Shown: positions 3,612 to 64,000, counted from the first letter of the stretch. The stretch: DNA of 64,000 nt from Pecten maximus (GCF_902652985.1 NC_047018.1:25916001-25980000), one strand, 5' to 3'. A program made the numbers and translations. Notes: a model not told the origin generated them from the letters alone.

Positions 3612-4050
3612 GGGAACAACCAACCAATTGAAAAAAAATAATTTTTTAAAGTCGAGCCAGGGATAAAATGTCTGGCAGCCACTGATTGGCCAGTATGTTA
3701 TGAAGTGAGAAAATTGATATGTAGCCTGATAGGTAACTATCAATAAGAAAGGTTGATATAAATTTCGTAAGTCCGATTGATTTTTTCCCAAATGTTCAGG
3801 TAATAATAACAAACAGGTAAACATTTAAGATTTTTGGGAATTTTTACTGCGAAATTCACCTATTTTCAAAATGGCTACCCTGGAGAAAATTTGAGCTCAA
3901 GGACCCAACTTTTTTTTTGATTAGGTGTTATATCAGACCCTAAACTTTTGTTATAAAGCATAATTGTCATATTGAATTCAAGAATTTGAATGAAATACTC
4001 CAAAACGTTAACACTAAAGTCTATGGGAAAACAATTGGTTGGTTGGTCCC
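3612..4050. mobile_element. MITE inserted into the 26-bp minisatellite
   Basis: TIRs GGGAACAACCAACCAATTG / CAATTGGTTGGTTGGTCCC (1 mismatch); flanks TAGA/TATA; minisatellite units on both sides. Confidence 0.75.
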
Positions 4051-12215: not shown

Positions 12216-12946
12216 CACAGGGGTATCTACACAGACCTCCCCCACAGGAGTATCTACACAGACGTCCCCCACAGGGGCATCTACACAGACGTCCCCCACA
12301 GGGGCATCTACACAGACGTCCCCCACAGGGGTATCTACACAGACGTCCCCCACAGGAGTATCTACACAGACGTCCCCACAGGGGTATCTACACAGACGTC
12401 CCCCACAGGGGTATCTACACAGACGTCCCCCACAGGAGTATCTACACAGACGTCCCCCACAGGGGTATCTACACAGACGTCCCCACAGGGGCATCTACAC
12501 AGACATCCCCCACAGGGATATCTACACAGACCTCCCCCACAGGAGTATCTACACAGACGTCCCCACAGGGGCATCTACATGGACGTCCCCCACAGGGGCA
12601 TCTACACAGACCTCCCCCACAGGAGTATCTACACAGACGTCCCCACAGGGGCATCTACACAGACGTCCCCCACAGGAGTATCTACACAGACGTCCCCCAC
12701 AGGAGCATGTACACAGACGTCCCCCACAGGAGTATCTACACAGACCTCCCCCACAGGAGCATGTACACAGACGTCCCCCACAGGAGTATCTACACAGACC
12801 TCCCCCACAGGAGTATCTACACAGACATCCCCCACAGGGGTATCTACACAGACGTCCTCCACAGGAGCATCTACACAGACGTCCCCCACAGGAGAATCTA
12901 CACAGACGTCCCCCACAGGAGAATCTACACCCCACAGGACATCTAC
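12216..12946. repeat. 27-bp GC-rich minisatellite (CACAGGGGTATCTACACAGACGTCCCC), about 27 units, some 26 bp
   Basis: Direct reading; source of spurious ORFs on both strands. Confidence 0.97.
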
Positions 12947-13099
12947 TCCACTACACTCTCTTCATTTACTATATATGTAAATGGTATTAAATAACAATAC
13001 ATCACAATCATGTCACACTTCATCAGCACTTTGTGATAGCCCTAGCTCATCACTAAACAATAGAATTCTACAAGAGTAAGTATATGTCTACCAAGATTT

Positions 13100-13600
13100 C
13101 TCGATGGCTGTCACATGACACCACACTTCTCATTTGCTGTCACATGACAACAGACATCTCAATGGCTGTCACGTGATCAAGATCACAGACTTTTCAATAG
13201 CTGTCACATGACGAAATACTTCTCAATGGCTGTCACATGACAACAGACTTCTCAATGCTGTGCTGTCACATGACAACAGACTTCTCAATGGCTGTCACAT
13301 GACAACATACTTCTCAATGGCTGTCACATGACAACATACTTCTCAATGCTGTGCTGTCACATGACAACAGACTTCTCAATGCTGTGCTGTCACATGACAA
13401 AATACTTCTCAATGGCTGTCACATGACAACATACTTCTCAATGCTGTGCTGTCACATGACCACAGGCTTCTCAATGGCTGTAACATGACAAAAGAATTCT
13501 CAATGACTGTCATTCGACAGACTTCTCATTGGCCATCACTTGATCACCACAAACATTTCAGTGTCTGTCACATGACAACAGACTTTTCAGTGTGTCACAT
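13100..13600. repeat. 29/33-bp minisatellite with GTCACATGAC core
   Basis: Unit GCTGTCACATGACAACAGACTTCTCAATG. Confidence 0.92.
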
Positions 13601-44400: not shown

Positions 44401-47400
44401 ACATTTTTACAGCAAAAGCGTGAACAAGCTTTGATAAAGTTGAGGAGAGACTTCCCTAACAAACAGCCACTGGTCACCACCACTCCACGACAAGGGGAGG
44501 TAACAGATCGCAAGGGATACCGCAATCAGATTGAGGAGAAAAAACAGAAGCAGTTTAGTAAGATGTTGGCCCAACAACCAACTGTCAGAGATGTCCGCCC
44601 TCAGAACACACAGGTATCTATTCAAACTGAATATTTTTCCAAGGTGACATGAACAAAGTTTCCATGCATTTATAACTCAAAAACCTTTAGTTTTAACTAT
44701 GAATATTGGTCCATTACAGATGCCTTCAAACATGAAAAATCAACCAGTTTGTCTGATTAACTCCTGAAGCTTTGTGTTGTCACAATGTTCAATGATTGAT
44801 ATACCCTCTCCCAATGTCTGTTCATATCCCTTCAGCAAACTGCCACTTACTAATACATGTTATGACAACTAATATATTGTGCCACCCACCACACTCTCCA
44901 CTCTGTTCCAGCCCCGTCGTAGGTCACCCTCCCCAGAATTCAGCGACCCTGGGATGCAGCTTCAGGCTGATCGTATACGGGCACGCATCAGAGATCTTCC
45001 TACGCGTCCTGAGGAAGTTGAGGAGCTACAGGTATAAGTCAAGTTGGTTCAAATGTGTCAAGGTCATTTGACTGGGTCAAGGTCAATAAAATCAAGAGAC
45101 TCCTCTGACTCAATGGAAGTTGATTGTACTGTATATTGCTGTTATGTATTGTTTTGTAGGTCTTTGGGACACCATTACCATTGACTATCTGTTTTTCAGG
45201 CAATTCTGAAAATATAATCTAATGACTTGTTTCATTACTACAGATAAAGCAGGTGATTTGTGTTGTTTGCATTTCAGATACCTGTATTATAAAGGTGTTT
45301 GTTTGGCTGGTTACTGACCACTGGTTTTCAGTTGGCTGGTTACTGACCATTGGTTCTCAGTTGGCTGGTTACTGACCATTAGTTCTCAGTTGGCTGGTTA
45401 TATTTACTGACCATTAGTTCTCATTTGGCTAGTTACTGGTCATTGGTTCTCAGTTGGCTGGTTACTGACCACTGGTTTTCAGTTGGCTGGTTACTGACGA
45501 TTGGTTCTCAGTTGGCTGGTTACTGACCATTGGTTCTCAATCGGCTGGTTACTGACCATTGGTTCTCAGTTGGCTGGTTACTGACCATTGGTTCTCAGTT
45601 GGCTGGTTACTGACCATTGGTTCTCAATTGGCTGGTTACTGACCATTGGTTCTCAGTTGGCTGGTTACTGACCATGGGTTCTCAATTTGCTGGTTACTGA
45701 CCAGTGGTTCTCAATTGGCTGGTACCTGACCATTGGTTCCCACCTACTTGATATTTGTGGTTTATTGGAATGATGGTGTTTGGCAGTGTCATTGGTAGAC
45801 AATATAAAGAGGACCTTCAATTCATGTCTGAGTTATTACTGATAGTGTATGAGAAACTTTTTTCTTGGAAAGCTGTTTCTATGGCACCTGTGTGAAAACG
45901 TGACATAGTTGTATAATTAGAATGTAAAGAAAGGTTTGCACCCACAAAACCGCAATATGATTAGAATGTAAAGAAAGGTCTGCACCCACAAAATCACAAT
46001 ATGCACACAAATTTTTTTTGCATGTTCCATCTACATAGCACTTGGTACATTTGTACTTCAGTTTCAGATGAACACATGTATAAGGCACAGTCATGTTGAT
46101 GTTTTGTTCAATTTCATTTTCTTCTATTTGTTAATTAACACTAATGTTAATGTTGACCAAAACTTACCATTTCACAGCTAAATTATCTTTATTCTGCGAA
46201 TGTTAACAAAATCTATGCAAATATGAAAACATTTATTTTAAGGAGCTTTCTTGATTTTAAGTTGATTTAAAACATCAAGAAGGTTCTTTAAGGTTGGCAG
46301 TTTTAACTTTAAGATAAAAAATGAGGAAAAAAATATGATTTTTTGGGAAATGTTAGGGACTAGAAAATATTGACTTGTATCCACATTACAGTATGAGTAA
46401 CTACTTAAGAAAGTACCATCAATATATATGATTATATCGTCCCTGTGTGATTTGATCAGGTCATGAAAAGAAAACATTGCTTTGAAATAATAAAAACATT
46501 TTAGATTAGAATTGGGAACTGCCCAGCCTCTGTCTCCTGGAGCTTTGACTATCAAATGAAGCAACACAGCTGTATCTGGATGCCTTTCTTCTTATTCTAC
46601 TCTCTTGTTAACAACAGTATAGCATTACTACAATGTAGATAGTTAATTAGGTCTTTACATAACTGTTGATATGATTCACAAATCTCAAGTAATTTTATTC
46701 AAATAAAACTTTAATGAATAAAATATCCATGTCATTACTCATCAGCTGAAAAGTTATTTTCCAAGTTTGTTAATATTTGTAAGGAAAAGGTAACAATATA
46801 ATTGCTGGTAAAGTAGATAGTAGTTGTGTTGATAAAGTAGACATGGAGTTGGTTGTTTTATATAGATTAAAGCATGGATTCCAGCTAACACACGTCTTTT
46901 AATTTTCCTTAAATAGCGGCGACAACAACAACAGGATGCGCTTCAGAGAGATTTGGAGGATATTTCACCCCGAAATTCCTACGAAGAGCGTCGACCACCT
47001 GTTGACCTCAGTCCTAGACTGGACGACTACGGCCCGGGTCTATCCGACAGATATCCCCCGCCCCAGGAGGACTACAGACAACCACCACAGGTGAGACTAG
47101 CCTTTAAGATTTTATATTGAAAAAAATCTTTCAACAGGTGCAGAACACAGAGATGGAGACTTTAGTAGTTTGTTGGTACAACAACCCTAACAAAGAATTA
47201 CAGGGACATGCATGCTATTGTTACTTTGTTTACTTTTGAAATTGTTAAATCCACAGGTATGTTTGTTTACTTTTGAAACTGTTAAATCCACAGGTATGTT
47301 TTGTACTGGGATACTATATACGATGGATTATAGAGCACCTGTAGGGTCCCATGTAACCGACTGAGGTCAGCGCGTAACATCAAGGAAAGCAGTAGTAACA

Positions 47401-50400
47401 ATTATCTGTGTCAGATTACAACACTTCACACAAAATAGATCTGCGATCATTCTATACAATAACATCACTAGTGTCATCATGTTCATTTGTCATATGAATC
47501 CTTGTTAATTAATAAGGAATCATTCTGTTACATTACTAATTTCAAGGATGGAGGTTTTCTTCTGTTAAATCAATCTGAACTCTTTCTAAATAAAATATGA
47601 ATATATGAGGCTTTATGCCTTTTGAGGTATAGTTTGAATTTAGAGGATGAATTCACTGAGCATGGTACTAATTTTTATGCATACCTTTTCAAAATTTAGT
47701 TCTTTCATTGTGTAACGAAGTCAAAAAGTGACAAGCTTTCCAATTTAGCATGCCAACCAGCCAGGCTCATATCAGGGATCAAGGCCACAGGCTGAAAACA
47801 AAATACAGGAAAGAGTTGAACATCAGCTGTATGATGAGAGTGTGAGGAAACATGTTGAGGTACAGCGCCGCATGGATGAGGAGGCAAAGAAGAGGAGACA
47901 AGCAGAACATCAAAATGATGAAAATATCAGGAAACAGCTAGAGATTGTGAAACGACGTCAGGAGCTGGAAGAAAAGAGGAAGGTGAAACAAAGGCTTGAG
48001 GAAAATAATAGGAGGCAGTTTGAGGAGGAAAGACGAAGACAGGCAGAGAGGCGGATGCAGGAACAAGCTGAGAAGGAATACCAAGAAGAAATGCGGAGAC
48101 AAATAGCAGACAAACGACAACGGGATGAAGAAGAAAAAAGGCTACTTCAGGTGAAACACCAAGAGAGTGTCATGAAACAGATTGTTGATAAAAACAGGCA
48201 AGAGGCAGAGGAGAAGAAGAGATTGAGGAAAGAACAGGGAAAGGATGAAGGAATATTAAAACAGCTGGAGAAAGGGAGAGAGAGGGAGGCTGACGAGAAA
48301 CGGAGGAAGCGAGAGTTTGAGGAAGAACAGAACAGACAGTTGGAAGAGTCTAGAAGATCGTTAGAAGAAGGCAGACCATCAACTGTCCATGTCAGATTTA
48401 GTGACTACGAGGAGGAGGAGGCAGTTCCGAGGAGGCGACGTCCAAACTCCGAGTACATTCCAGGGTATGGTGTTGAGCAGCGAGTGGAACAGAGAACTAA
48501 GGTACACAGGACTGCCACTAACATGGGTGAAAAGTGTGATATTGAGGTCGTAGGATAGGACTGCCACTAACATGGGTGAAAAGTGTGATATTGAGGTCGT
48601 AGGATAGGACTGCCACTAACATGGGTGAAAAGTGTGATATTGTGGTTGTCAGATAGTTGTGTGTTTTAATATGGTAAGACATTAACAGACATGTAGGTCA
48701 GTTTGATCAGAGTTTAAGACTTTGAAGGTGCTATGAAGATTTCTGCTCTTTTTCTACCTAGCTTACATAAGGAAAAGTATACAAGATATTGCATGTACAA
48801 TATACATATATCACCTGTCAACTTAAACCAACTGTCAGCTGTCCTTGTGTCAGATCTACATCATGTATGTACATAACATTATGTGCAGTGGCTTCTCTAA
48901 CTCTGTTGATGTGTACACTAACACTGTGATGACAGGTTTGGTTCTGAGTCAGGACTATTATGTGTACACTAACACTGTGATGACAGGTTTGGTTCTGAGT
49001 CAGGACTATTATGTGTACACTAACACTGTGATGACAGGTTTGGTTCTGAGTCAGGACTATTATGTGTACACTAACACTGTGATGACAGGTTTGGTTCTGA
49101 GTCAGGACTATTATGTGTACACTAACACTGTGATGACAGGTTTGGTTCTGAGTCAGGACTATTATGTGTACACTAACACTGTGATGACAGGTTTGGTTCT
49201 GAGTCAGGACTATTATGTGTACACTAACACTGTGATGACAGGTTTGGTTCTGAGTCAGGACTATTATGTGTACACTAACATTGTAGACAGGTTTGGTTCT
49301 GAGTCAGGACTATTATGTGTACACTAACACTGTGATGACAGGTTTGGTTCTGAGTCAGGACTATTATGTGTACACTAACACTGTGATGACAGGTTTGGTT
49401 CTGAGTCAGGACTATTATGTGTACACTAACACTGTGATGACAGGTTTGGTTCTGAGTCAGGACTATTATGTGTACACTAACACTGTGATGACAGGTTTGG
49501 TTCTGAGTCAGGACTATTATGTGTACACTAACACTGTGATGACAGGTTTGGTTCTGAGTCAGGACTCTTATCTGTGTGATGTATGACTGTCGAGGTCTGA
49601 ATGGTAAAATGTCACTCTTTATTACTGTCGTTAATCATGCATTATCGTTGAAGATCATATAACGGTAAAGTCTTAGATGTGATCTTCAAATTGATTACAT
49701 GGCCTTTACATGTATTGTGTTCACATTCTTTTGCAAAAAAAACTTGATGGATTTTTTATTGCTTTTTTGTGTAAATATATCATCAGAGTATTTAGTAAAT
49801 ACCTATTGACCTACTGCAGTAATGAGGCTTTTTGTGTGATTATTTTACTCCCTCTTCAGACTTGGTGTACACTGTATTTTTATTACGAAGATGTAATGTT
49901 CTTTGGTCCATCATATAGTGATAATTAATACAGCTGTGAGGTTTATAGTAGATACTCTAAAGACAAAGTATTGATCTTCCTGTATCACTTGATCTACCTT
50001 AGTATATCATTTCTAGATGTATGCTGCCATATAAGTTAAAAAATATGTATATAATGCTGTACAATTTTATTCATGTTATGTTCTTGCTACCGAGTGTGGT
50101 AGAGTTGTCTCCCTTAAAATGTCCTCATCTTTGTGACATACCGGGTAATATAAGGTACGTGTATATATACATTTTCAAGGATTTTTTTGGAGAAATTCTT
50201 TTAGAACAAAAGAAACATGGAGTATGATATAGTACACATCCTTCAATGTGTCACTCTGAGTATACTGTTATGAAATCTCCTATTAGTCCACTTTTTTTGT
50301 TTACATGTTAGAGAGATTTAAAGTTGGGGTGGATAAGACCTCTATAAGATGAAAAATCATACTTGCTTTTTATCTTAAAGATTATTTTTGTGTTTTTTAG

Positions 50401-53400
50401 CCCACCATCATCAGATGGTGGGCTATTCAAATCGCCCTGCGTCCGTGGTCCGTCGTCCGTCCGTCCGTCCGTCCGTCCCTCCGTCCGTCCGTCCCTCCGT
50501 CCGTCCGTCCCTCCGTCCGTCCGTAAACAATTCTTGTTATCGCTAATCCTCAGAAAGTACTGAAGGGATCTTTCTCAAATTTCATATGTGGGTTCCCCTT
50601 GGTGCCTAGTTATGCATATTGCATTTTCAGACCAATCGTAAAACAACATGGCCGACAGGCAGCCATCTTGGATTTTGACAATTGAAGTTTGTTATCGCTA
50701 TTTCTGAGAAAGTACTCAAGGGATCTTTCTCAAATTTCATCTGTAGATTCCCCTTGGTGCCTAGTTATGCATATTGCATTTTGAGACCAATCGGAAAACA
50801 ACATGGCCGACAGGCAGCCATCTTAGATTTTGACAATTGAAGTTTGTTATCGCTATTTCTAAGAAAGTACTCAAGGGATCTTTCTGAAATTTCATATGTA
50901 GGTTACCCTTGGTGCCTAGTTATGCATATTGCATTTTGAGGCCAATCGGAAAACAACATGGCCGACAGGCAGCCATCTTGGATTTTGGCAATTGAAGTTT
51001 GTTATCGCTATTTCTGAGAAAGTACTGAAGGGATCTTTCTCAAATTTCATATGTAGATTCCCCTTGGTGCCTAGTTATGCATATTGCATTTTGAGACCAA
51101 TCGGAAAACAACATGGCCGACAGGTAGCCATCTTGGATTTTGTCAATTGAAGTTTGTTATCGCTATTTCTGAGAAAGAACTGAAGGGATCTTTCTCAAAT
51201 TTCATATGTAGGTTTCCCTTGGTGCCTAGTTATGCATATTGCATTTTGAGACCAATCAGAAAACAACATGGCCGACAGGCAGCCATCTTGGATTTTGACA
51301 ATTGAAGTTTGTTATCGCTATTTCTGAGAAAGTACTGAAGGGATCTTTCTCAAATTTCATATGTAGGTTTCCCTTGGTGCCTAGTTATGCATATTGCATT
51401 TTGAGACCTATCAGAAAACAACATGGCCGACAGGCAGCCATCTTGGATTTTGACAATTGAAGTTTGTTATCGCTATTTCTCAGAAAGTGCTGAAGGGATC
51501 TTTCTCAAATTTCATATATAGGTTCCCCTTGGTGCCTAGTTATGCATATTGCATTTTGAGACCTATCAGAAAACAACATGGCCGACAGGCAGCCATCTTG
51601 GATTTTGACAATTGAAGTTTGTTATCGCTATTTCTCAGAAAGTGCTGAAGGGATCTTTCTCAAATTTCATATATAGGTTCCCCTTGGTGCCTAATTATGC
51701 ATATTACATTTTAAGACCTATCAGAAAACAACATGGCCGACAGGCAGCCATCTTAGATTTTGACAATTGAAGTTTGTTATCGCTATTTCTCAGAAAGTAA
51801 TGAAGGGATCTTTCTCAAATTTCATATTTAGGTTCCCCTCGGTGCCTAGTTATGCATATTGCATTTTGAGACTAATCGTAAAACAACATGGCCGACAGGC
51901 AGCCATCTTAGATTTTGACAATTGAAACTTATTATCGCTATTTTTCAGAAAGTACTGAAGGGATCTTTCTCAAATTTCATATGTAGGTTCCCCTTGGTCC
52001 CTGGTGTTGCATTTTGGGACCAATCCAAAAACAACAGACAGCCACTATTGCTAAATCTTTATATATAGGTTCCCCTTGTTTGAAAAGTACTAGAGGGCTG
52101 TTTCTGAATTTACACAGATTAGTAAGACTTAGAGGAAGGGAAAAGTAGAGAAAAGATCAATCTGACATGGAACCTATAAAGATCATTCAATGGTGGGCGC
52201 CAAGATCCCTCTGGGATCTCTTGTCATGTTTTTGTTGTTTGAGATTCTGTGCTCGAATCATTTTTTTTACAAGTGGGAGAGAGTACACTATATTTGTGTT
52301 GTAAGAGATGTTAAGTGACGGTACATGTACGTCAACTGTCCGATACATAAAACATGTATTTACTTACTTGCTCTAGATATTGTACATGTTTTGTTTTTAT
52401 TTTTTCTGTAGTATTTGTTGTAAATGATTCCTACTGTTGAATTGTTTATACTATTATCTGCAGAGGTTATCTCATGCTTGACATGTACAGATTGTACTGG
52501 GAAGGTTTTCACTCTCTCATCAAGATATGTTTTAATTGATGAGGAGAGTTTATACAAATATCACACCACATAATCTAGTCAGACCTATTTCATTTATACA
52601 AAAGGGATGGATATCTTGTAATATTTTTTTTTTCCATTTTGAAATATAACTTGTTTTTGTCAAATTGTTTTCTTTAAAAAGACAACAGTGGAACCTCCAG
52701 GTGATAAGGTTGTTGGAGAAGGTGTTAGCCTACCAATATCTAGTCATAAGCAACGCCAGAAAAAGTTGATGGAGGAAAGAAATCAAGAATATAATGCTAT
52801 TCTAGCACAGGTATACCTGCACAGATTATGGATTTTTTTTGTCTTTGTGAGTAGAACATTTGTAATACCAAAGTGTGTTTTTGTCAGTAAGAATATATGT
52901 TCTTTTGGCTAGTAGAGATATATTTTCTTTTCAAATTCAAAGATAGAAGTTGCTTAGTAATCCACAAAACAACTACAACAGTATTAGCATTCATGTTTTT
53001 AATATCCTTCAATGCTTAAATTGAAATAAATTGAAATAAATTTTTGCTCCGTCTGATATTTTTAGCCCACCATCATCAGATGGTGAGCTATTCAAATCGC
53101 CCTGCGTCCGTGGTCCGTCGTCCGTCCGTCCGTCCCTCCGTCCGTCCGTCCCTCCGTCCGTCCGTCCGTCCGTAAACAATTCTTGTTATCGCTAATCCTC
53201 AGAGAGTACTGAAGGGATCTTTCCCAAATTTCATATGTGGGTTCCCCTTGGTGCCTAGTTATGCATATTGCATTTTGAGACCAATCGGAAAACAACATGG
53301 CCGACAGGCAGCCATCTTGGATTTTGACAATTGAAGTTTGTTATCGCTATTTCTGAGAAAGTACTGAAGGGATCTTTCTCAAATTTCATATGTCGGCTTC

Positions 53401-56400
53401 CCTTGGTGCCTAGTTATGCATATTGCATTTTGAGACCAATCGGAAAACAACATGGCCGACAGGCAGCCATCTTGGATTTTGATAATTGAAGTTTGTTATC
53501 GCTATTTCTGAGAAAGTACTGAAGGGATCTTTCTCAAATTTCATATGTAGGCTTCCCTTGGTGCCTAGTTATGCATATTGCATTTTGAGACCAATCGGAA
53601 AACAACATGGCCGACAGGCAGCCATCTTGGATTTTGATAATTGAAGTTTGTTATCGCTATTTCTGAGAAAGAACTGAAGGGATCTTTCTCAAATTTCATA
53701 TGTAGGTTCCCCTTGGTGCCTAGTTATGCATATTGCATTTTGAGACCAATCGCAAAACAACATGGCCGACAGGCAGCCATCTTGGATTTTGACAATTGAA
53801 GTTTGTTATCGCTATTTCTGATAAAGTACTGAAGGGATCTTTCTCAAATTTCATATGTAGGTTCCTCTTGGTGCCTAGTTATGCATATTGCATTTTGAGA
53901 CCAATCGAAAAACAACATGGCCGACAGGCAGCCATCTTGGATTTTGACAATTGAAGTTTGTTATCGCTATTTCTGAGAAAGTACTGAAGGGATCTTTCTC
54001 AAATTTCATATGTAGATTCCCCTTGGTGCCTAGTTATGCATATTGCATTTTGAGACCAATCGGAAAACAACATGGCCGACAGGCAGCCATCTTGGATTTT
54101 GACAATTGAAGTTTGTTATCGCTATTTCTCAGAAACTTATGAAGGGATCTTTCTGAAATTTCATATAAAGGTTCCTCTTGGTGCCTAGTTATGCATATTG
54201 CGTTTTGAGACCAATTGGAAAACAACATGGCCGACAGGCAGCCATCTTGGATTTTGACAATTGAAGTTTGTTATCGCTATTTCTCAGATACTTATGAAGG
54301 GATCTTTCTGAAATTTCATATGTAGGTTTCCCTCGGTGCCTAGTTATGCATATTGCATTTTGAGACTAATCTGAAAACAACATGGCCGACAGGCAGCCAT
54401 CTTGGATTTTGACAATTGAAGTTTGTTATCGCTATTTCTCAGAAAGTACTGAAGGGATCTTTCTGAAATTTCATATGTAGGTTCCCCTCTGTGCCTAGTT
54501 ATGCATATTGCATTTTGAGACTATTCGGAAAACAACATGGCCGACAGGCAGTCATCTTGGATTTTGACAATTGAAGTTTGTTATCGCTATTTCTCAGAAA
54601 GTACTGAAGGGATCTTTCTCAAATTTCATATGTAGGTTCCTCTTGGTGCCTAGTTATGCATATTGCATTTTGAGACCAATCGAAAAACAACATGGCCGAC
54701 AGGCAGCCATCTTGGATTTTGACAATTGAAGATTGTTATCGCTATTTATCAGAAATTGCTGAAAGGATCTTTCTGAATTTCATTTGTAGGTTGCCCTCTG
54801 TGTCTAGTTATACATATTGGATTTTGAGACCAGTCAGAAAACAACCTGGCTGACAGGCAGCCATCTTGTATTTTGAAAATTGAAGTTTGTTATCGCTATT
54901 GTACAGAAGGTACTGAAGGGATCTTTCTCAAATTTCATATGTAGGTTCCCCTTGGTCCCTGGTATTGCATTTTGGGACCAATCGGAAAACAACATGGCCG
55001 ACAGACAGCCATTATGGCTAAATCTTAAATTTTATATATAGGTTCCCCTTGTTTGAAAAGTACTAGATCTAGAGGGCTGTTTCTGAATTTACACAGATTA
55101 GTAAGACTTAGAAGAAGGGAAAAGTAGAGAAAAGATCAATCTGACATGGAACCTATAAAGATCATTCAATGGTGGGCGCCAAGATCCCTCTGGGATCTCT
55201 TGTTAAGGATGACATGGCCTTGACAGACAATTGTTTTACTATCACATTTATATACAAAAGGGCATGTCTAGCATTAAGACCACCACATCTAAATTCCTTT
55301 TTTATTCTCCTGCAATGAGACATGCTACTGAGTTTTGGTCAGAAATTATATATTAGCCACATTCAGCATGAAACGACAATGTAGAGAATATCAGATAATA
55401 GATGTTCTATACCAGGGTCATATATATTCCAGTTTTTCCAAATTAAAAATCAATTTTGCTTTATCAAAGATATAAATTTGATTTTTTTTTTATTTAATAC
55501 ATATATTACCAATATTTACTGAGTAATTTACAATTTTCATTATTCATTAAAATCTATTTCTAAATGATAACATCAGGACAATAAAAAGAGCAGAACCAAC
55601 CCACAATATTCAGGGGAGGGGTTCAGTCTGAGGATCTCAAGTCACAAACAACGGAAAAAACAGCTGCAGGAGGAGAGAAATATAGAGTATAATGAAATGA
55701 TTACACAGGTATCTTTGCACTTTTATTGTGAAATTCTTTTCGTTCATATTTTCAAGGCAGCATTAATAAGCTGTATTCCAACTTTGAGTAATATTACTAC
55801 TAGGAAACTATCATGATTGATAAGAATGGAGCATTTTAAGGAAACTATGCCAGAAAGAATCTGACATGACAGGGATGAGACTAAATAACTCAGACTAAAG
55901 TCATAAACAGAAGAGAAGACAAATGATGAAGGACAGAAAGATAGCAAAATTATTGTTTGAAATGTGCTTTAGACAATCATACCGATTTAAAAGAATGTTT
56001 ATGATCATTATCATTGAATTTGTATGTGGTAGGAGGTTTATATCATAAAGCTTAAATCAGTGCTAATGTCTGTGTGTATTTGATAGTTTGATCTAAATAT
56101 CATACACACATATAGGATACCAAATCATAAATATCATACACACATATAGGATACCAAATCACAGGCTGGTAGGAAAATTGCCATGTCTGGGGAGGGGTTG
56201 AGTCTTCATATCTCAGACTCTGGTCATAAACAACGGAAAAAACAAATAGAAGAGGAGAGGAAAAAAGAATATAATGAAATGGTCGCCAAGGTACAAATGC
56301 ACTTTTTGTTTTGTTTATTTAGATTTTGTTTCTCTATATACAAATTTTAATCTAAGTATCCAGGGATAAAGAAAAAATTCTTAAATTTAAATATTTCATG

Positions 56401-59400
56401 ATAATAGTTGTAACGTACATTCTCGAAATATTGTTGAAACATGATTTTACATGTACTTTCAATATAATTCTGTAAAAATGGGAAATTCAGAATTTTTAAA
56501 CATGGTTACACGCTTCTATGAATAGGACACAAGGCAGGCCAGTAAGAAAGCCATGATTGTATCTGGGGAGGGGGCGAGTCTACGTATCTCAGACTCTGGT
56601 CACAAACTTAGAAAAAAACAACTGGAGGAGGAAAGGAAAAAAGAGTATAATGAAATGGTTGCCCAGCAGGTACAAATGCACAAATTTAAGATTTTGTAAG
56701 ATTTTTTTTCTAGGACAAATTTTTGTACATACATATTAATATACAAGTGTACTTAGTACGAATGTGATAAAAATACATGTTGTTGTGATATGTGTCGAGG
56801 TATGAATCATAAATGTTTTATGCTAATGACGATACAATTTACATCTCCAAATTTTGTTGAAACATATTACTTTAAAATTCATACATAATTCCACAAATAT
56901 TGTAAGTTTAGAAATTAAGGAGATGGTTACACACTTCTAAAAATAGGACACAAGGCAAACCAGTAAGGAAGCCATGATTGTATCTGGGGAGGGGGCGAGT
57001 CTACGTATCTCAGACTCGGGTCACAAACTGCGGAAAAAACAAATGGAGGAGGAGAGGAAAAAAGAGTATAATGAAATGGTCGCCAAGGTACAAATGCACA
57101 AATTTGTTGTTGTGTTGTTTTTTTTTAAACTTTTGTGTAATTTTTGATATATTTTTGTCATAGTTTAAGGTGTGTAATTACTGAGTCTTTTAATTATCTT
57201 TCATTTAAAATCACTTCAGATCTACAAAGTGTATGATTAAGCTGTAAATACTGAATCAACTTGAGTTATTTTTGAATTTCTTCGAAATTCAATATTCTAG
57301 CTTAATGTTCAGTCCAAAAAGAAAGATGGAGATGATTTGGTGGGGAATGCTATAAGTTTACAACTGTCTGGCCATGAAGGTCAACGCCAGCAACTAAAGG
57401 AAGCTGTGAAGAAAGAGTACAATGATATGCTGGTTCAGGTACTTATAGTCTTAGCTTTTCTGTTGAGATCAGCAATTTAACCAATTTTAAACATTCCTTT
57501 CCTATTTTATAATACCCACCAAATGTTCCCAGCAAGCAAAAACTAATATTTTTATATGAAAAGTAACATTTTTATCAACCATTTGTGAAAGTTTTCTTCC
57601 AGAAAATGACATTTTGATTAGCTTTTAGTAGTAAAATATATATTATGTGAATAGAAACACTTTTTTATATTGAAATTCAATTAGCTGAAAATTCCTTCAT
57701 GATCTCAAAGGTTATGAATTGAAGTAGAGTGCAATGGTGTATATTGTTGGGAGTGTAAATAGGTGTACTCAAACATTTACTGAAGTTTAATTGTTTAAAA
57801 ATTCTATAAATTACCAACAGTATAGTCACAAACCTTTGTAGTTTTAGTAGGTTTTGACCCTGTATCACAGATTTTCTGTACTAGACATGAAAAAACATTC
57901 AATTATCCATCAACATAACCAAGTAGTTAGTATTTCTAAATCTTCGATTTTTTTGGTAGTTTATAACAGTATATTTAGATTATATTACTTGGTATATTGG
58001 TTTTGTCGTATATTTATTATTTGAAGTGATTGTGATATTCTCCTACATGACCATGGTTTGTACAAGTAGACTACGTACCTCTAGAGTAGCCATGTAAGGT
58101 CAGTATAGAACTAAAAGTACTCTGGCAAGTAGACATGTTGTCTTTATTTTAGCAAGGAATCAAGGTATTAGACAAGGACAACAAGAGTGCTCTTCAAGGG
58201 GAGGCAATCAGTCTGCCTCTGTCAGCCCACGAGGAGAAGCGTCATCAGATGATAAAAGACAGACAAAAGGAGTACAACAATATGTTAGCCAAGGTACTAT
58301 AGTACAGTCATACAGTACAGTCATTATGTCTGTGGTGATCCAAAGGTACTACAGTACCGTCATTATGTCTGTGGTGATCCAAAGGTACTACAGTACTGTC
58401 ATTATGTTGGTGGTGATCCAAAGGTACTACAGTACTGTCATTATGTCGGTGGTGATCCAAAGGTACTACAGTACTGTCATTATGTCGGTGGTGATCCAAA
58501 GGTACTACAGTACTGTCATCATGTTGGTGGTGATCCAAAGGTACTACAGTACCGTCATTATGTCGGTGGTGATCCAAAGGTACTATAGTACTGTCATTAT
58601 GTCGGTGGTGATCCAAAGGTACTACAGTACCGTCATTATGTCGGTGGTGATCCAAAGGTACTATAGTACTGTCATTATGTCGGTGGTGATCCAAAGGTAC
58701 TACAGTACTGTCATTATGTCGGTGGTGATCCAAAGGTACTACAGTACTGTCATTATGTCTGTGGTGATCCAGTACCAGTATAAAATGTAGTTTAATCTCC
58801 CTCAACCTTAGTTTGATATTATAATTCTGTACAGTGGACCCGCGATAATCCGGACGCCGATAGTCCGGAAAACTCGCAGTCCGGACGGAATAGCACGGGA
58901 ACGGATTTCCGTAACGTTATTTGTACTCACCAGTCCGGAAATTCGGTTTCCGATTCCGGAAGCCCATTTTGGGAACGGAAAGTACTTTTCATTAGTAAAT
59001 TTCCCCCGATAATCCGGACGATTTTTTCACCACGAGGAGAGAAAAATGTCGGGCAAGTCACCCGTGTCGACAGCTGTACAGACTATCGCTTGACACTGTG
59101 CGTAGTCATAGCGACCGCTGCCAGGTCATAGCCCCGGGTGTTTACCTGTGTTACAATGTAGCTCTGTTTTTATAACGGTACATTGCTTTTCTTTACGATC
59201 GACCTAAATGCTTCAGTATTAAAGGGTTTTATAGTGTAGACTGGTCTTGCTTTTATCAACTTGACGTACAATATCTATTATAGTTATTTTACATAGTGCT
59301 ATTTCGTAGTTAGCAATAATTAATTCACTAACATACAGTATGTGATACGATACTTAATCAATCACAAATGCATGTAATAAATTTATTATCGGTAATTAAC

Positions 59401-62400
59401 ATCACTAACAATTGTATTGGGTAAACAAGGATATCGGCTTGTAACACCGTTACGTGTAATGACGACTCATTGAAAGATGCATGTTATTAATTACACACAT
59501 GGTACATTTACCGGGTCTTTCATTTCAGGTTCATAATTTACGTAAAAAAACGTACATTGTACATAGTGGGTCTTTCATTTCAGGTATTTAACGTATGTAA
59601 TTTCTACTCGTTTGTGAACCTCTGGGACGTAACCCATGTGTGTTGTTTGTAGGTTACATATGTCCACTATAAATAAAACAACTTTCACTTCACATGTTCT
59701 TTTAAAAACATTGTTTATTTTTTAGTTTCTACAAAATAAAAGAAAACAAGAATCATATCAAGAACATAAGTATATTTATTTTTTAAAAAGACTGACAATT
59801 AGACGTGTTTATGAAACGTCATTAAAACGTCCCGTATTGTATAGAGTCAAGGGAGATAACTCTTACACAACAATTTTTTTTGACCTGGTAGACGGAATTC
59901 GGTAGTCCGGAAAACTCGTAATCCGGACGGTTTGGGCTGGGAACGAAGGTGTTCGGATTATCGAGGGTCCACTGTATATGTACAGTTATAATATGAAAAT
60001 ATATTTGAAAACCTCATCTGTTACTTTCTATGTGACCATGGTAGAAATGGATCTCTGAGGTTTTTATGTAGTGTTTGATACATCTCTGTTGTGTGTAGAT
60101 GAATGTACATATCCATCAGGTGATACTGTTTTCCCCTCTAAACCACACATTCTTTTCTCTTACTCCTGTAAATACCTGTATATATAACTGTGAACATGCA
60201 AGGTCATCTACTTTCACCAATTGCAACCTATAAATCTATTTATTAAGAACTACTGTTTATTTATACAAGATAAGGAGGCTTGTATGCATGTTTGTCTAAA
60301 CAACTAGATTTACCATTTTTATTTGTCATCTTTCTTAAAATCCTAGAAAGAGTCACAAAGTCAACCAAAACAGAGATCCATTGTTGATGGGGAAGACAAA
60401 AGTCTGCCATTGTCTTATAACCAACATAAACAATTACCACAGGCGAGAAAACCTGAAAACATAGACACCAAGGTACAACACAGTATACTCTGTAGTTATA
60501 GACACGCATACAGATTTTTTTATCTCATTTTCTCCATTTCAATTATTCAATTCTTAAATATTTTTTTTCATATTAACATCAGTTTGGTACTTTGAGTAGT
60601 TATTGTATTTTCAGATTTGAGTTTTCCTGAATTTTACAATTTATTAAAACATTTATTTCATATCATATACGATAATTTCTGAGCCATTGTTGTTTTAATT
60701 TTTTTATCTGCAAAGCAATTTTCAGGTTTTAATTAACTATTCATGGATCATGGCCATACTTGCATAATTTATTATTTTTATTTAAAAACCTTGAAGAAAG
60801 CGTCTGACAAATCTGGCCGTAATCCTCTTGAAGGAGAGGCCATAAGTCTCCCGATATCTGGCCACGAGAAGGAGCGGCGACGGTTGATGGAGGAGAGGCG
60901 ACGTGAATACAATGAAATGATCGGCCAGGTATCTGGCATTTTATGTTGATGTATATTTAATGTTTTTGTTAAAGTTTGGTTGATAAGCAAAAACCATGCA
61001 GACAATAAGTACTAGGTACTGTTCCTAAAAGCATTAAGTACGGTAATTGTTGCGTGAGTCAGTGAGATTTTCTTTTTTTTCTCATCAATGCAGATATTGT
61101 GTTTCTTTTACATCGTATTTACTTACTATGTAAAAACTAAGTCCTGTTTGGAATATGCATTTCTATGGGCTAAATTCTTTATGTTAACACCTTATAAGAA
61201 ATTGTCATTGTTTGTTACCAGTATTATTATAATACATTGATTGCCTAGTGAAGCTTTAGGTCTTAATTCTCATATGAAATTCATACTTTAACCCATTTTG
61301 TAGCATAAGTCGAAAAAACCAAACCAAAAAGGAACAAAATCAACTTGGGTCCCAGAAGAGCGTGAGTCACATGACCCAAGTAATAATGACATTAGGTCTG
61401 ACCTGAAGCACCAAGACTTTACTCAGGTACTGAGACTTGTCATTATGGTCTCAAATATCAATTCCTCTTGTCATTACGGTCTCAAATATCAATTCCTCTT
61501 GTCATTATGGTCTCAAATATCAATTCCTCTTGTCATTACAGTCTCATCATATATCAATTCTGCTGTTTAAATGTACATATCAAATATTCTAATTCACAAA
61601 TTTTATGGTTCAAAATTTTAATTCTATAACATATTGACAACCCTGTTATTTGATAATTGGGTATTCTTGTGCTAGCCTGCTATTTTACTGACAGGGTAAA
61701 AACATTTCTTATTTCTCATGTTGATCTGGTTTCTATTTCTGTAGCAATATGATAGCGATCTTGAAGGAAGGGAGACAACTGATTTTGAAAGAAAGCAACA
61801 AGAGCTAAATAGATTACTTAAGGTATACATATACCTGCACATATACCTAAATTAAATCTATAATCATACGCATTTTTTAGATTTTTTAAAACTTTTTCTT
61901 CATATTTCTTTTTTGTAGTCAGTGTATATTATTATTATTATTATGAAAAAATAGTATATTATACATTTTATGCAACATACATGTAAGTTGTATAGTGATC
62001 AGCATTGTGAATTAACACAGTACTAAGTACATAGTAATGTAGCCTAGAAGTTTTATGTATACAATGTATATTTATTGTTTTGCTATTTACATTTGTTATT
62101 TTGCTATTTACATTTGTTATTAGGTAATAATTAAGTAATGTTAGAATGTTTAAATTAATAGCTAAAACTAATTACACATTGCATTACAGCTATTGTTACA
62201 AGATACACAGCACATTATATAACTGCACATTTTTTTTTTTAATTAAGGAATCGTGGCGAGTCTGACCAGTGTCCGAGTTGGTTGTGGCGTCAATACTTGT
62301 ATAATATGTGATTTTATCATAAGACGCCAATCACTCTCTACAAAGGTCTCAAAATGATTCCACAACCCTAGATCCTTACAATCTGTACATGTAATACAAT

Positions 62401-64000
62401 GTATATACCGTATTTGACCTAATAAGTGTGCCTGCCCTAATAAGGGCGCCCCTACCTTTTTTCAAGGAAATAAATCTTTGACTGAGTGTCAAAATGGTGT
62501 TCAAAAGTAATAATTCATTTGAAATGTTTTGCTACTTTATGTGTTCAATTTTCTTCAGCAAATTCAGTAACTGGAACACAAGTTTTCGCCACATTTTGTC
62601 TATTCCTACAGATGGCATGTCAGTGCAAAGAGCACCCGAAACTAAACACACATACAAATTATAACTTACCATCTTTATTTGAAGATAAAGTAAAAGACTT
62701 CATTCTTGTTGATAAATAACTTTTGTTCAGAATAGAAAGCTAGTAAAATACATTGTAAATCAATTATTAGGTCAAAGAAAATGATGTCTGATATGATTTG
62801 GGAAATCACCTGTGTCTATAAATAGAACACAAAAGAGTTCCATTTGAACATAAATGGTGGAACACACGTTCTCTGGTCTAAAGAGGCATGGTTTACAAGT
62901 TTACAGGAATATTCAAGTGATGTTCAAGCTTAATATATGATAATGAATTGATATCTTCATGTGGAATATTTTTATTTTATTTTACCGTTTCCACAGCCTT
63001 GGGTATTCTGCTACAAGGTATAGTCTGTTTCATAAAACTTCAGAATAACTAATCTTAATAAGGGCACCCCCACTGTCAATTACCTGCACCCTTATTAGGT
63101 CAAATACGGTATTACTTGAATGCTGTCCCACTGAAGCAGACCTGTTTAGTCCTAATAAATAGTGTTAAGACTGTAAATATAGATTTAATTGTATGTTGTG
63201 AAGACTTCATTTTGGATTTAGTTATCACAGATGTCTGAACATGTTCTGACTTATTCTTAATATGTAATTAACAAAGTATTTATACAGAGTGTTGTAATGA
63301 TATTATGCCTTTATCAATGTGTTGTTTTGTGTGTGTTTTAATGATAACATGTTTCCCTATCCAGTACTACTGAATTTCACTTACCTGAACATATTTACAG
63401 ATGTCCTCATATCAGTTGTAATCATGATCATTATACAATTCATTTCATCCGTAATCTACCTTAACAAAATGAACATGTCTAAACTGCTCACTAGGTACTC
63501 GATACAGAGTAACTTTATCTCAAGGATATACATGTACAGCACAGTGGAACTGTTTTTGCCATAGTTGTACCTTTTGGATTCAGATGATTTTTTACAACTG
63601 TATATATATTCTGTGAATAAATTTTCTGTCTAAATCTATGAACAACTCTTCTTAATTGCATGTTCTTTGATCTCACACCTGAACTATAAGTAAAAAGAAA
63701 GATGTATTTTTTCAATCTGAATTGATCATGATGTTATTCAGTGTTAAAGTCATGTATTATATTTCAAAGAAAAATTGAAATCATGGGTTAGTAAGCATTT
63801 TACAGAAAAGGCAGAAAAGAAGACTTACACTTGAAATTGATTTCTTTAGAAAAAAAGAAATTATAGTGTAGTTCTAATTATAGCATTTAAGGAATTGTAT
63901 ACCTGGAAAGTAAGATTATAGTGAGTACTAATTTGTTTGGCTACAGCCTGACCCCTACCCCCGGGAACAGGCCCGCCCAGAGCTGCTTTCCTCCCTACCC
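29365..64000 (+). CDS. CSPP1: Centrosome and spindle pole-associated protein 1-like, spliced, 3' end beyond window (about 1150 codons if all exons are used)
   Basis: N-terminus MAAAVQQRQGDDIDRFIKDQRQKL resembles, from memory, vertebrate CSPP-L DNLDEFIEEQKARL. Repeated GxSLPI...EERxxEYN modules resemble CSPP1 GVSLPIGERLSAKERLKLERNKEYNQFL. 23 GT-AG exons, all phase 0, with no in-frame stops. Confidence 0.8.
30824..30898 (+). CDS. CSPP1: CSPP1-like exon DEYGETERGRRRQWDRSGNNQYAEQ
   Basis: tgttag/gtacta, 75 nt. Confidence 0.8.
31250..31393 (+). CDS. CSPP1: CSPP1-like module exon IDNKEDENENAFSKRYPTPELSLRLGQYEKVRLRLNAERQREYNELLQ
   Basis: tatcag/gtatct, 144 nt. Confidence 0.87.
31773..31799 (+). 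CDS. CSPP1: CSPP1-like 27-nt microexon KKGTNVGKK
   Basis: Strong acceptor cttacttttttcttcag, donor AAG|gtacag. Confidence 0.65.
32045..32207. mobile_element. Small MITE (163 bp)
   Basis: TIRs CAGGGCATCCAGTTGAC / GTCTACTTGATGCCCTG (15/17), flanked by TAATA on both sides. Confidence 0.6.
34155..34253 (+). CDS. CSPP1: CSPP1-like exon NLQQSPRDLYDYDVVKREMMETKRQEYLDYLQK
   Basis: tgctag/gtacac, 99 nt. Confidence 0.82.
34590..35100. repeat. 22-bp minisatellite (GTCCAATATAATGGGGTACCCT) interrupted by a SINE
   Basis: Direct reading. Confidence 0.93.
34921..35054 (+). mobile_element. 5'-truncated V-domain-type SINE
   Basis: Core ttttctccgggtactccagctttcctccacc, tail ctggctgttaacaggacgttaaac followed by (CAAAC)n. 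Confidence 0.7.
36315..36488 (+). CDS. CSPP1: CSPP1-like exon GQPGAPSSRL...VNFGEWEKGFQDDKRKDYNNYLKTKQ
   Basis: ctaaag/gtaaag, 174 nt. Confidence 0.8.
36868..37342. repeat. 79-bp tandem repeat, about 6 units
   Basis: gtcttaattcc recurs at 36945, 37024, 37103, 37186, 37265. Confidence 0.95.
38000..41820. repeat. 45-bp minisatellite (GGATTCCTTGAGTGTTATCCTGGTTTGAGGTTTCTGGGTGGGTAT), about 85 units
   Basis: Direct reading; contains an 855-bp higher-order duplication. Confidence 0.98.
41997..42125 (+). CDS. CSPP1: CSPP1-like exon NQGRVLKKEPTPPLEGMKFGEYEEYKREQEPDRKRQYKEDLEK
   Basis: ctgtag/gtacaa, 129 nt, wedged between two large minisatellites. Confidence 0.85.
42122..44144. repeat. 27-bp minisatellite (GAAGGTACAATATGTCATGGTTGTTTA), about 75 units, starting at a splice donor
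   Basis: Direct reading. Confidence 0.98.
44413..44613 (+). CDS. CSPP1: CSPP1-like exon QKREQALIKLRRDFPNK...RDVRPQNTQ
   Basis: ttacag/gtatct, 201 nt. Confidence 0.82.
44912..45031 (+). CDS. CSPP1: CSPP1-like exon PRRRSPSPEFSDPGMQLQADRIRARIRDLPTRPEEVEELQ
   Basis: ttccag/gtataa, 120 nt. Confidence 0.82.
45302..45740. repeat. 29-bp minisatellite (GTTGGCTGGTTACTGACCATTGGTTCTCA), about 15 units
   Basis: Direct reading. Confidence 0.95.
46917..47090 (+). CDS. CSPP1: CSPP1-like exon RRQQQQDALQRDLEDISPRNSYEERRPP...DYRQPPQ
   Basis: aaatag/gtgaga, 174 nt. Confidence 0.85.
47749..48501 (+). CDS. CSPP1: CSPP1-like large E/R/K/Q-rich helical exon (251 codons)
   Basis: atttag/gtacac, 753 nt; corresponds to ORF 47842-48558. 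Confidence 0.87.
48508..48641. repeat. 49-bp tandem repeat, nearly 3 units, 6 nt after a donor
   Basis: aggactgccactaac at 48508, 48557, 48606. Confidence 0.93.
48909..49566. repeat. 51-bp minisatellite, about 13 near-identical units
   Basis: ATGTGTACACTAACACTGTGATGACAGGTTTGGTTCTGAGTCAGGACTATT. Confidence 0.97.
50393..52224 (+). mobile_element. Helentron/HINE (pearl/DINE-1-like) non-autonomous element with 155-bp satellite array, copy 1 (9 full units plus a partial)
   Basis: T-run, 5' hairpin AGCCCACCATC-ATCA-GATGGTGGGCT, (CCGT)n microsatellite, 155-bp period (GGGATC at 50565, 50720, 50875...), 3' subTIR TGGTGGGC and hairpin AGATCCC-TCT-GGGATCT. Confidence 0.88.
52682..52810 (+). CDS. CSPP1: CSPP1-like module exon TTVEPPGDKVVGEGVSLPISSHKQRQKKLMEERNQEYNAILAQ
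   Basis: aaaaag/gtatac, 129 nt; the acceptor position is less certain. Confidence 0.82.
53059..55204 (+). mobile_element. Same Helentron/HINE family, copy 2 (11 full units plus a partial)
   Basis: Same termini and architecture, same orientation as copy 1. Confidence 0.88.
55577..55708 (+). CDS. CSPP1: CSPP1-like module exon DNKKSRTNPQYSGEGFSLRISSHKQRKKQLQEERNIEYNEMITQ
   Basis: catcag/gtatct, 132 nt. Confidence 0.8.
55841..55950 (+). pseudogene. Decayed copy of the module exon (MTGMRLNNSD*SHKQKRRQMMKDRKIAK)
   Basis: Aligns by eye to the neighbouring exon (TCAGAC...GTCATAAACA...CAAAT); in-frame TAA at 55896-98, frameshift relative to the acceptor, no donor. Confidence 0.6.
56150..56290 (+). 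CDS. CSPP1: CSPP1-like module exon DTKSQAGRKIAMSGEGLSLHISDSGHKQRKKQIEEERKKEYNEMVAK
   Basis: atatag/gtacaa, 141 nt. Confidence 0.8.
56526..56669 (+). CDS. CSPP1: CSPP1-like module exon DTRQASKKAMIVSGEGASLRISDSGHKLRKKQLEEERKKEYNEMVAQQ
   Basis: gaatag/gtacaa, 144 nt. Confidence 0.8.
56947..57087 (+). CDS. CSPP1: CSPP1-like module exon DTRQTSKEAMIVSGEGASLRISDSGHKLRKKQMEEERKKEYNEMVAK
   Basis: aaatag/gtacaa, 141 nt. Confidence 0.8.
57301..57438 (+). CDS. CSPP1: CSPP1-like module exon (LNVQ)SKKKDGDDLVGNAISLQLSGHEGQRQQLKEAVKKEYNDMLVQ
   Basis: Two in-frame acceptors (57300 or 57312), donor gtactt. Confidence 0.78.
58153..58293 (+). CDS. CSPP1: CSPP1-like module exon QGIKVLDKDNKSALQGEAISLPLSAHEEKRHQMIKDRQKEYNNMLAK
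   Basis: ttttag/gtacta, 141 nt. Confidence 0.83.
58290..58770. repeat. 39-bp minisatellite (AAAGGTACTACAGTACTGTCATTATGTCGGTGGTGATCC), about 12 units, starting at a splice donor
   Basis: Direct reading. Confidence 0.96.
58832..59974 (-). mobile_element. Non-autonomous Tc1/mariner-pogo type DNA transposon, copy 2 (inverted relative to 17600-18763)
   Basis: TA|CAGTGGACCCGCGATAATCCG ... CGGATTATCGAGGGTCCACTG|TA. Confidence 0.9.
60347..60472 (+). CDS. CSPP1: CSPP1-like degenerate module exon KESQSQPKQRSIVDGEDKSLPLSYNQHKQLPQARKPENIDTK
   Basis: tcctag/gtacaa, 126 nt, open frame. Confidence 0.72.
60797..60928 (+). CDS. CSPP1: CSPP1-like module exon KASDKSGRNPLEGEAISLPISGHEKERRRLMEERRREYNEMIGQ
   Basis: ttgaag/gtatct, 132 nt. 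Confidence 0.83.
61304..61426 (+). CDS. CSPP1: CSPP1-like exon HKSKKPNQKGTKSTWVPEERESHDPSNNDIRSDLKHQDFTQ
   Basis: ttgtag/gtactg, 123 nt. Confidence 0.78.
61436..61560. repeat. 31-bp tandem repeat, about 4 units, 9 nt after a donor
   Basis: CTTGTCATTATGGTCTCAAATATCAATTCCT. Confidence 0.9.
61745..61822 (+). CDS. CSPP1: CSPP1-like exon QYDSDLEGRETTDFERKQQELNRLLK
   Basis: ctgtag/gtatac, 78 nt. Confidence 0.78.
62408..63109. mobile_element. TA-flanked MITE (pogo/Tigger-like CCGTA termini)
   Basis: TA|CCGTATTTGACCTAATAAG ... CTTATTAGGTCAAATACGG|TA, perfect 19-bp TIR; internal TAATAAGGGC repeats. Confidence 0.85.
63947..64000 (+). CDS. CSPP1: CSPP1-like exon, truncated by window: PDPYPREQARPELLSSLP
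   Basis: ctacag acceptor, abrupt GC rise, ends in SLP (possibly another module). Confidence 0.7.

Follow-up and report, generated by a model that had tools for sequence, protein, structure and literature searches.

CSPP1 is a centrosome and cilium microtubule protein, known as a Joubert-syndrome protein, which stabilizes microtubules from the lumen. In vertebrates, its long form CSPP-L carries two copies of a short module near the N terminus and a C-terminal CSPP1_C domain. Symmetric-phase exons that each encode one unit, have been multiplied in tandem, and are often alternatively spliced are familiar from the repeats of tau, MAP2, and MAP4 and from nebulin and titin. Here, we describe a stretch of 64,000 nucleotides (nt) of Pecten maximus DNA with an N content of zero, below called the window, in which nine tandem exons each encode one copy of the CSPP1 N-terminal module. 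The exon-duplication pattern is like that of tau/MAP2/MAP4, nebulin, and titin, although the sequences are unrelated and single scallop modules have no Pfam match. Unlike vertebrate CSPP-L with its two copies, the scallop gene contains at least 12 strong modules.

The closest counterparts are the CSPP1 genes of Patella vulgata (XP_055956326.1), Littorina saxatilis, Haliotis, and oysters, which are the same gene with the same repeat module, in Patella with one module per exon. The Patella array exons stand directly upstream of an exon encoding a conserved P-P-K-P-x-T-P-G-G...L-G module, and the Littorina and Haliotis runs lie upstream of this module in the protein. The scallop copies differ in bearing the signature G-E-G/A-x-S-L-x-I/L-S..H, whereas G-L-P-x-G-x-Y-E or W-R-E-P-S is found in these counterparts, and they form a clade of their own. 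They number nine, compared with one to three in other bivalves, five in Patella, and at least seven in Littorina, and the P. maximus annotation misses most of the array. A second bivalve family, represented by the "trichohyalin-like" Mytilus edulis protein XP_071151322.1 and by Pinctada imbricata KAK3089408.1, has 12 to 14 consecutive modules of this type, is about 30% identical to CSPP1, and gave no CSPP1_C hit in the models seen. In contrast to this family, exons 1 and 2 and the flanking exons of the window match CSPP1 proper, which rules out a paralog. Literature searches brought up no account of this repeat or of CSPP1 in molluscs.

Results

All nine array exons proposed in an earlier sequence-only reading are present on the plus strand at the positions given there, each of them an open frame between AG and GT whose length, 126 to 144 nt, is divisible by 3 (Table 1). 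A hidden Markov model (HMM) of the nine copies, run against the six-frame translation of the window, recovered all of them at E values of 5e-13 to 9e-25. Beyond these, this array HMM matched only positions 31310-31390 (E 9e-6) and a decayed copy at 55899-55940, and no other comparable module was detected on the minus strand or elsewhere in the window. A second, family HMM of 27 positions, built by iteration over 516 segments of 144 CSPP1 proteins, recognized eight of the nine exons (E 1e-7 to 3e-12); array exon 8 was matched by the array HMM only.

The aligned copies give the consensus G-E-G-x-S-L-x-I-S-G-H-K-x-R-x-K-Q-L-x-E-E-R-K-K-E-Y-N-E-M, in which G, S, L, S, H, and E are invariant. Each module is laid out as an unstructured lead with G-E-G/A-x-S-L-x-I/L-S..H, followed by about 23 residues that are predicted to be helical and close with E-Y-N-x-M/L. 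The motif formulated in the sequence-only reading stands as a consensus across copies, but it is not a strict rule, since several copies deviate: exon 6 has G-N-A and K-E-A-V, exon 7 has I-K-D-R, and exon 1 has E-Y-N-A-I-L. Exon 8, already called degenerate in that reading, indeed lacks E-Y-N, contains prolines, and is not predicted to be helical. The decayed copy reads R-L-N-N-S-D-stop-S-H-K-Q-K-R-R-Q-M-M-K-D-R-K, with 14 codons matched and E-Y-N missing.

All nine array exons are genuine coding sequence of P. maximus CSPP1, a gene that starts with the ATG at 29365 and probably extends past the window to the part encoding CSPP1_C. We regard this gene anatomy, together with the origin of the array proposed below, as very probable. 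The N-terminal exons match CSPP1 of other molluscs, exon 1 aligning also to the Dreissena and Patella N termini, and the order of N-terminal exons and modules (exons 1, 2, 41997, and 68749) is colinear with CSPP1 of other molluscs. The P. maximus locus on chromosome record LR736841.1 (L001) is identical to the window over 48249-64000 and extends 7.5 kb further, which places the window on that record. The array is bridged by a scallop CSPP1 model, Ylistrum balloti CSPP1-like X1, which includes CSPP1_C (PF24578) and takes in exons 44413, 44912, and 46917, followed directly by 68749; over its last 1055 residues, it shares 82% identity with P. maximus CSPP1-like X2, a model that is likewise on LR736841.1. 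CSPP1_C itself is located outside the window and L001. N-terminal exons, colinearity, and the bridging model together identify the gene as the CSPP1 ortholog that it had been taken for.

Searching 1.84 billion representative proteins with the array profile gave 20 matches. The top match, XP_033737893.1 (LOC117325627, 189 amino acids [aa], Pecten maximus), is encoded by the window itself, and the other long matches are CSPP1 of Haliotis, Biomphalaria, and Priapulus, those of Haliotis and Biomphalaria with the Pfam domain CSPP1_C. A search for short relatives of XP_033737893.1 returned this protein alone.

All 22 mapped exons are flanked by AG and GT and have phase 0-0, except for exon 1, which begins at the start codon. 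Four upstream exons had been suspected to be older, divergent copies. Exon 31250 is a clear module, whereas 34155, 36315, and 41997 are weak against the family HMM (E 0.1-0.3); 36315 and 41997 do align to recognized modules of Pinctada, oyster, and mussel CSPP1, exon 36315 with Pinctada residues 45-85 and Mytilus residues 155-183. The last residues of exon 41997 match, by eye, the first 15 of the Ylistrum X1 model. A further module suspected at 63947 is real, though degenerate, and runs past the end of the window. The large exon at 47749 probably encodes a coiled coil.

Table 1. Mapped exons of P. maximus CSPP1, the decayed module copy, and donor-associated minisatellites (window positions unless L001 is given)
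Feature	Position	Strand	Remarks
Exon 1 with start codon	29365-29454	+	ATG, GT donor; aligns with oyster CSPP1 residues 1-24/29
Exon 2	30824-30898	+	75 nt, phase 0, AG/GT; R-R-Q-W-D-R...Y-A-E-Q similar to Mytilus californianus CSPP1 residues 30-68
Canonical module exon, S-L-R-L-G-Q-Y-E...E-Y-N-E-L-L	31250-31393	+	144 nt, AG/GT; family HMM E 3.7e-10
Divergent module exon	34155-34253	+	99 nt, AG/GT; ends K-R-Q-E-Y-L-D-Y-L; weak HMM E 0.11
Divergent module exon, F-G-E-W-E...K-D-Y-N-N-Y-L	36315-36488	+	174 nt, AG/GT
Conserved G-M-K-F-G-E-Y-E module exon	41997-42125	+	60% identity to Pinctada residues 139-178; 49% to Mytilus 185-235
Exon	44413-44613	+	201 nt, phase 0, AG/GT; 74% identity to Ylistrum X1 residues 15-82
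Exon	44912-45031	+	120 nt, phase 0, AG/GT; 100% identity to Ylistrum X1 residues 82-115
Exon	46917-47090	+	174 nt, phase 0; 90% identity to Ylistrum X1 residues 123-180
Large exon, 251-residue Glu/Arg/Lys-rich segment	47749-48501	+	AG acceptor, AAG/GTAC donor, phase 0; boundaries inferred
Array module exon 1	52682-52810	+	129 nt, AG/GT, phase 0; array HMM and family HMM
Array module exon 2	55577-55708	+	132 nt, AG/GT, phase 0; array HMM and family HMM
Decayed module copy (pseudo-exon relic)	55872-55940	+	HMM E 1e-3 over 55899-55940; in-frame stop
Array module exon 3	56150-56290	+	141 nt, AG/GT, phase 0; 78-79% nt identity to exons 4 and 5
Array module exon 4	56526-56669	+	144 nt, AG/GT, phase 0; 92% nt identity to exon 5
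Array module exon 5	56947-57087	+	141 nt, AG/GT, phase 0; youngest duplicate, partner exon 4
Array module exon 6	57301-57438	+	138 nt, AG/GT, phase 0; array HMM and family HMM
Array module exon 7	58153-58293	+	141 nt; XP_033737893.1 begins at internal Met, 58249
Array module exon 8, degenerate	60347-60472	+	126 nt; HMM E 5e-13; spliced in XP_033737893.1
Array module exon 9	60797-60928	+	132 nt; spliced in XP_033737893.1; family HMM E 3e-12
Exon without module motif	61304-61426	+	123 nt, phase 0; residues 102-142 of XP_033737893.1
Degenerate module exon, S-L-P-Q-G-Q-Y-E...N-E-E-M-L	63947-64075	+	AG acceptor; AAG/GTAC donor 64075/64076 in L001
Conserved P-P-K-P...L-G module exon	68749-68904	+	just past window, in L001; fuller motif P-P-K-P-x-T-P-G-G...L-G
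Donor-associated minisatellites	42121-44144, 48508-48646, 58311-58771, 61436-61560; L001:20631-22968, L001:15887-18060

The array module is the family-wide CSPP1 N-terminal repeat. With the family HMM, we counted one module in Nematostella, two in Acanthaster, three in Priapulus, five in Capitella, and 3 to 15 in annotated mollusc proteins. The one or two modules counted in frog, bird, and squirrel agree with the figure of about two given in that reading for the human protein. Among molluscs, the highest counts were found in Littorina (15), Nucella (12), and Patella (11), and bivalve CSPP1 proper has five to nine. The scallop gene has at least 12 strong modules: eight in the array, those at 31250 and 68749, and two more in the downstream model. 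With about six weaker ones, the sum is roughly 18.

In a tree of 95 modules and 34 columns, the nine scallop copies form one clade (Shimodaira-Hasegawa-like approximate likelihood ratio test [SH-aLRT] support 84), and none of 500 label shuffles was equally clustered. The Littorina and Patella runs make up separate clades (SH-aLRT 93 and 99, respectively), while the 68749 module clusters with the modules at the corresponding position in seven other species. Runs of near-identical modules occur at residues 771-1088 in Littorina, 509-724 in Patella, and 355-534 in Haliotis, all upstream of the conserved P-P-K-P...L-G module. At the Patella locus, five tandem phase-0 exons of 126-132 nt with one module each directly precede the exon of the conserved module, and one module per phase-0 exon may be the ancestral exon plan. 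The array slot at the Pinctada locus holds three unrelated modules, one of them unannotated, and scallop-type copies were not found at this locus. A scallop-type exon of 132 nt, the counterpart of array exon 9, is present in a short contig (L002) from another species.

The single clade and the absence of the array at the Pinctada locus bear out an origin by tandem duplication of a one-module exon. The proposal of a lineage-specific expansion holds in part: the origin lies in the scallop lineage, but the copy number is not exceptional. Since Patella and Littorina have separate arrays, the scallop expansion is lineage-specific in origin and not unusual in size, and the module tree indicates that it is one among several parallel expansions. 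The sequence-only reading had itself allowed that comparable copy numbers might be general in invertebrate CSPP1; with 3 to 15 modules in mollusc proteins, this is half the case.

The array is surrounded by several repeats. A 155-bp satellite occupies 50534-52036 and 53183-55012, and array exon 1 lies in the unique 1.1-kb gap between these blocks; a (CGTC)n run precedes each block (50440-50524 and 53105-53173). At 56094-56161, a perfect 34-bp tandem duplication repeats the acceptor of array exon 3 and its first 12 bases; the upstream acceptor copy, if used, would reach a TAA four codons in. The intron between array exons 7 and 8 contains a 29-nt inverted repeat (58830-58858/59948-59976; 90% complementary, arms 1089 nt apart), which may represent the ends of a small transposon. 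No gene was recognized in window positions 1-29300, where four open frames of 92-118 codons have no Pfam match; this part carries minisatellites at 4050-5064, 12216-12930, 13094-13600, and 20166-21072.

Discussion

The explanation that we favor, and which we hold to be moderately likely as a whole, covers origin, product, and function of the array. In this account, one phase-0 exon with a single CSPP1 N-terminal repeat was tandemly duplicated repeatedly in the scallop lineage, after its split from pearl oysters and true oysters. Most of these duplications are old, those giving rise to the cluster of exons 2 to 5 younger, and at least one copy has decayed since. Each module consists of a flexible lead of about 20 residues with the S-L-x-I/L-S..H patch and a mixed-charge helix of about 23 residues, and modules in series are predicted to act as independent helices on flexible linkers, forming no folded domain. 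They might serve a luminal microtubule stabilizer as additional contacts of low affinity and so increase its valency, the number of modules per molecule being set by cassette splicing.

Several points weigh against this explanation. Six of the nine array exons lie outside any called gene, and only the junctions 58293/60347, 60472/60797, and 60928/61304 are present in a RefSeq model. Array-type modules among the 1.84 billion cluster representatives amount to the 189-aa fragment and one exon-sized open reading frame from another species, and this is a weak argument against abundant full-array transcripts. The clade support for the nine copies is moderate (SH-aLRT 84 on 34 columns), and the link to the P. 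maximus CSPP1_C model depends on the Ylistrum bridge and the shared record. Annotated Patella isoforms are invariant in their array. Finally, a human CSPP1 fragment of residues 1-294, which contains the two modules, is reported not to bind microtubules alone (PMC11285173).

AlphaFold, given the nine copies as an alignment, left residues 1-19 unstructured (predicted local distance difference test [pLDDT] 53-61) and predicted a helix at residues 20-42 (pLDDT 84-91), as expected from the earlier proposal of a helical module. In the natural 189-aa model, the helices are separate and unpacked (predicted template modeling score 0.22), and the degenerate copy is nonhelical. Single modules gave no Pfam family, microtubule-binding repeats included, at E values up to 10 except for a chance SUZ match (0.068), the other exons of the gene had no Pfam match, and neither the module profile nor the Haliotis protein had a relative in the PDB. 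A mammalian short isoform without the N-terminal 294 residues, in which both mammalian modules fall, is less efficient at preventing depolymerization, and microtubule binding and pausing have been mapped to later parts of the protein (PMC9948759). Full-length CSPP1 exceeds its isolated middle region in potency (PMC11285173), and CEP104 binds the C-terminal part (PMC6702141). We tentatively suggest that the modules might be weak accessory microtubule contacts whose number sets valency. Nearly as likely is a role in which they make no contact with microtubules and are either charged single-helix spacers setting the reach of the N terminus or repeated docking sites for another protein, which is an equally tentative possibility. 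The helices are rich in both Lys/Arg and Asp/Glu (four to eight and two to six per 24 residues, respectively) with little net charge, and the invariant S-L..S..H and E-Y-N positions resemble a specific binding patch; together with the behavior of the human 1-294 fragment, this speaks for spacers or docking sites. The improvement of microtubule stabilization by the N terminus within the full-length mammalian protein (PMC9948759, PMC11285173) speaks against them, though indirectly.

Cassette use of the array exons in Pecten is plausible by analogy, although we stop just short of favoring it. The exons of the N-terminal half are all phase 0-0, and hence any subset could be included without a frame break. 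In Ostrea edulis and Crassostrea angulata, whose isoforms carry numbers up to X39 and X40, the isoforms differ in that blocks of 35, 42, 81, or 124 residues, corresponding to one to three modules, are missing in frame, and Mya arenaria isoforms omit single modules of 31 and 49 residues. In the Ylistrum X1 and X2 models, the Glu/Arg/Lys-rich exon is missing along with the whole stretch between 47090 and 68749, and the 46917-equivalent exon is joined straight to the 68749-equivalent. Alternatively, the array might be constitutive, with all nine modules and the Glu/Arg/Lys-rich exon in the main transcript, so that the protein would have a long, invariable N-terminal extension; annotation failures caused by intronic minisatellites would then account for the short Ylistrum model and the fragmented RefSeq models. 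We consider this unlikely. The splice sites are all intact and all copies but one conserved, RefSeq models at this locus visibly run through donors into minisatellites, and the Patella array never varies between isoforms, as a fixed extension would have it; yet module exons in the equivalent protein stretch of oysters and Mya are annotated as skipped in many isoforms, and the direct link in both Ylistrum models likewise favors cassette use. A mutually exclusive exon cluster with competing RNA pairing of the Dscam type was rejected: among eight inverted-repeat pairs in 55100-61500, no arm was common to several partners, so that no docking site and selector arrangement was seen, and no conserved sequence was found upstream of the array exons.

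Judged from divergence between the copies, the array is mostly old and has been preserved as coding sequence, with at least one member lost. At the nucleotide level, most exon pairs are 40-62% identical; the figure rises to 70-79% within exons 2 to 5 and to 92% for exons 4 and 5, the sole pair with recognizable intron similarity (84% identity of the flanking intron). By the Nei-Gojobori method, the proportion of synonymous differences is 0.5-1.0, saturated for most pairs, and that of nonsynonymous differences is 0.2-0.5. The ratio of nonsynonymous to synonymous divergence (dN/dS) is 0.12-0.45 in most estimable pairs and 0.72-0.73 in the pairs of exons 2/7 and 8/9; for the youngest pair, exons 4 and 5, dS is 0.30 and dN is 0.04. 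Saturated synonymous sites combined with dN/dS mostly at 0.12-0.45 indicate that the exons have been maintained as coding sequence. This makes it improbable that the array is largely a graveyard of duplicated exons that are seldom or never spliced and are decaying, as might be read from the six exons in no gene model, the one dead and the one degenerate copy, and the absence of a full-array protein among the 1.84 billion representatives. Eight copies keep motif, frame, and both splice sites in spite of saturated synonymous sites, dN/dS is well under 1 in most estimable pairs, and even the degenerate exon 8 is within a RefSeq model. An assembly artifact was ruled out, as the copies differ by 8-60% in nucleotide sequence and their introns are unrelated.

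In RefSeq, this single gene is divided into at least four models: a 481-aa model terminating at a stop at 48558 in the frame of the 47749 exon, the 189-aa model, an 867-aa model consisting mostly of a minisatellite open frame, and the CSPP1-like model. XP_033737893.1 is composed of part of array exon 7, exons 8 and 9, and the exon at 61304, followed by donor read-through into a minisatellite. Since no gene is called over 48559-58248, annotation is lacking for six array exons and for the beginning of exon 7. That the exons form a separate small gene (LOC117325627, 189 aa), as this annotation places them, is hardly credible, considering that the model begins at an internal Met and ends by read-through, that the array exons are phase-continuous with CSPP1 exons on either side, and that a scallop CSPP1 model spans the region. 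An unannotated module frame, G-L-K-V-G-A-Y-S...E-Y-N-D-Y-L (E 5e-10), was also found in an intronic position at the Pinctada imbricata CSPP1 locus (L004:28721-28820), and therefore missed module exons are not specific to the scallop.

Five CSPP1 exons out of 22 have a minisatellite starting at most 25 nt from the 5' splice site, against 0.5 expected at random (P about 1.5e-4), and a sixth minisatellite starts 60 nt past the donor. The 27-bp unit of the minisatellite at 42121 and the 43-bp unit of that at L001:20631 contain the last exon bases and the GT donor, giving about 75 and about 57 donor copies, respectively. A 698-codon T-N-G-S-T-D-T-V-P-N frame, which makes up most of the 867-aa RefSeq model, is minisatellite sequence at L001:15101-20719 (window 63349 on), and a 762-codon minus-strand frame at 38503-40791 falls within a 45-bp array at 38002-41820. 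Both open frames stem from intronic minisatellites, and neither looks like real coding sequence.

These findings correct the P. maximus annotation, which spreads one gene over four or more models, misses six coding exons, and lengthens two models by minisatellite read-through. More speculatively, and with less confidence than we place in either proposed role of the modules, the stretch of mollusc CSPP1 immediately upstream of the P-P-K-P...L-G exon might be a hot spot at which one-helix exons are amplified independently (nine copies in scallop, five in limpet, at least seven in periwinkle, three in abalone) and which, with cassette splicing, would provide each lineage with an adjustable number of weakly binding helices. 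If true, this would constitute a natural valency dial on a luminal microtubule stabilizer in cilia-rich animals. The scallop array is a new example and not a new kind, as other molluscs expanded the repeat independently. In mollusc genes, the N-terminal part of CSPP1 is built of a short repeat that is readily multiplied and kept under selection, which provides naturally occurring copy numbers of 1 to 15 with which to probe the role of this repeat.

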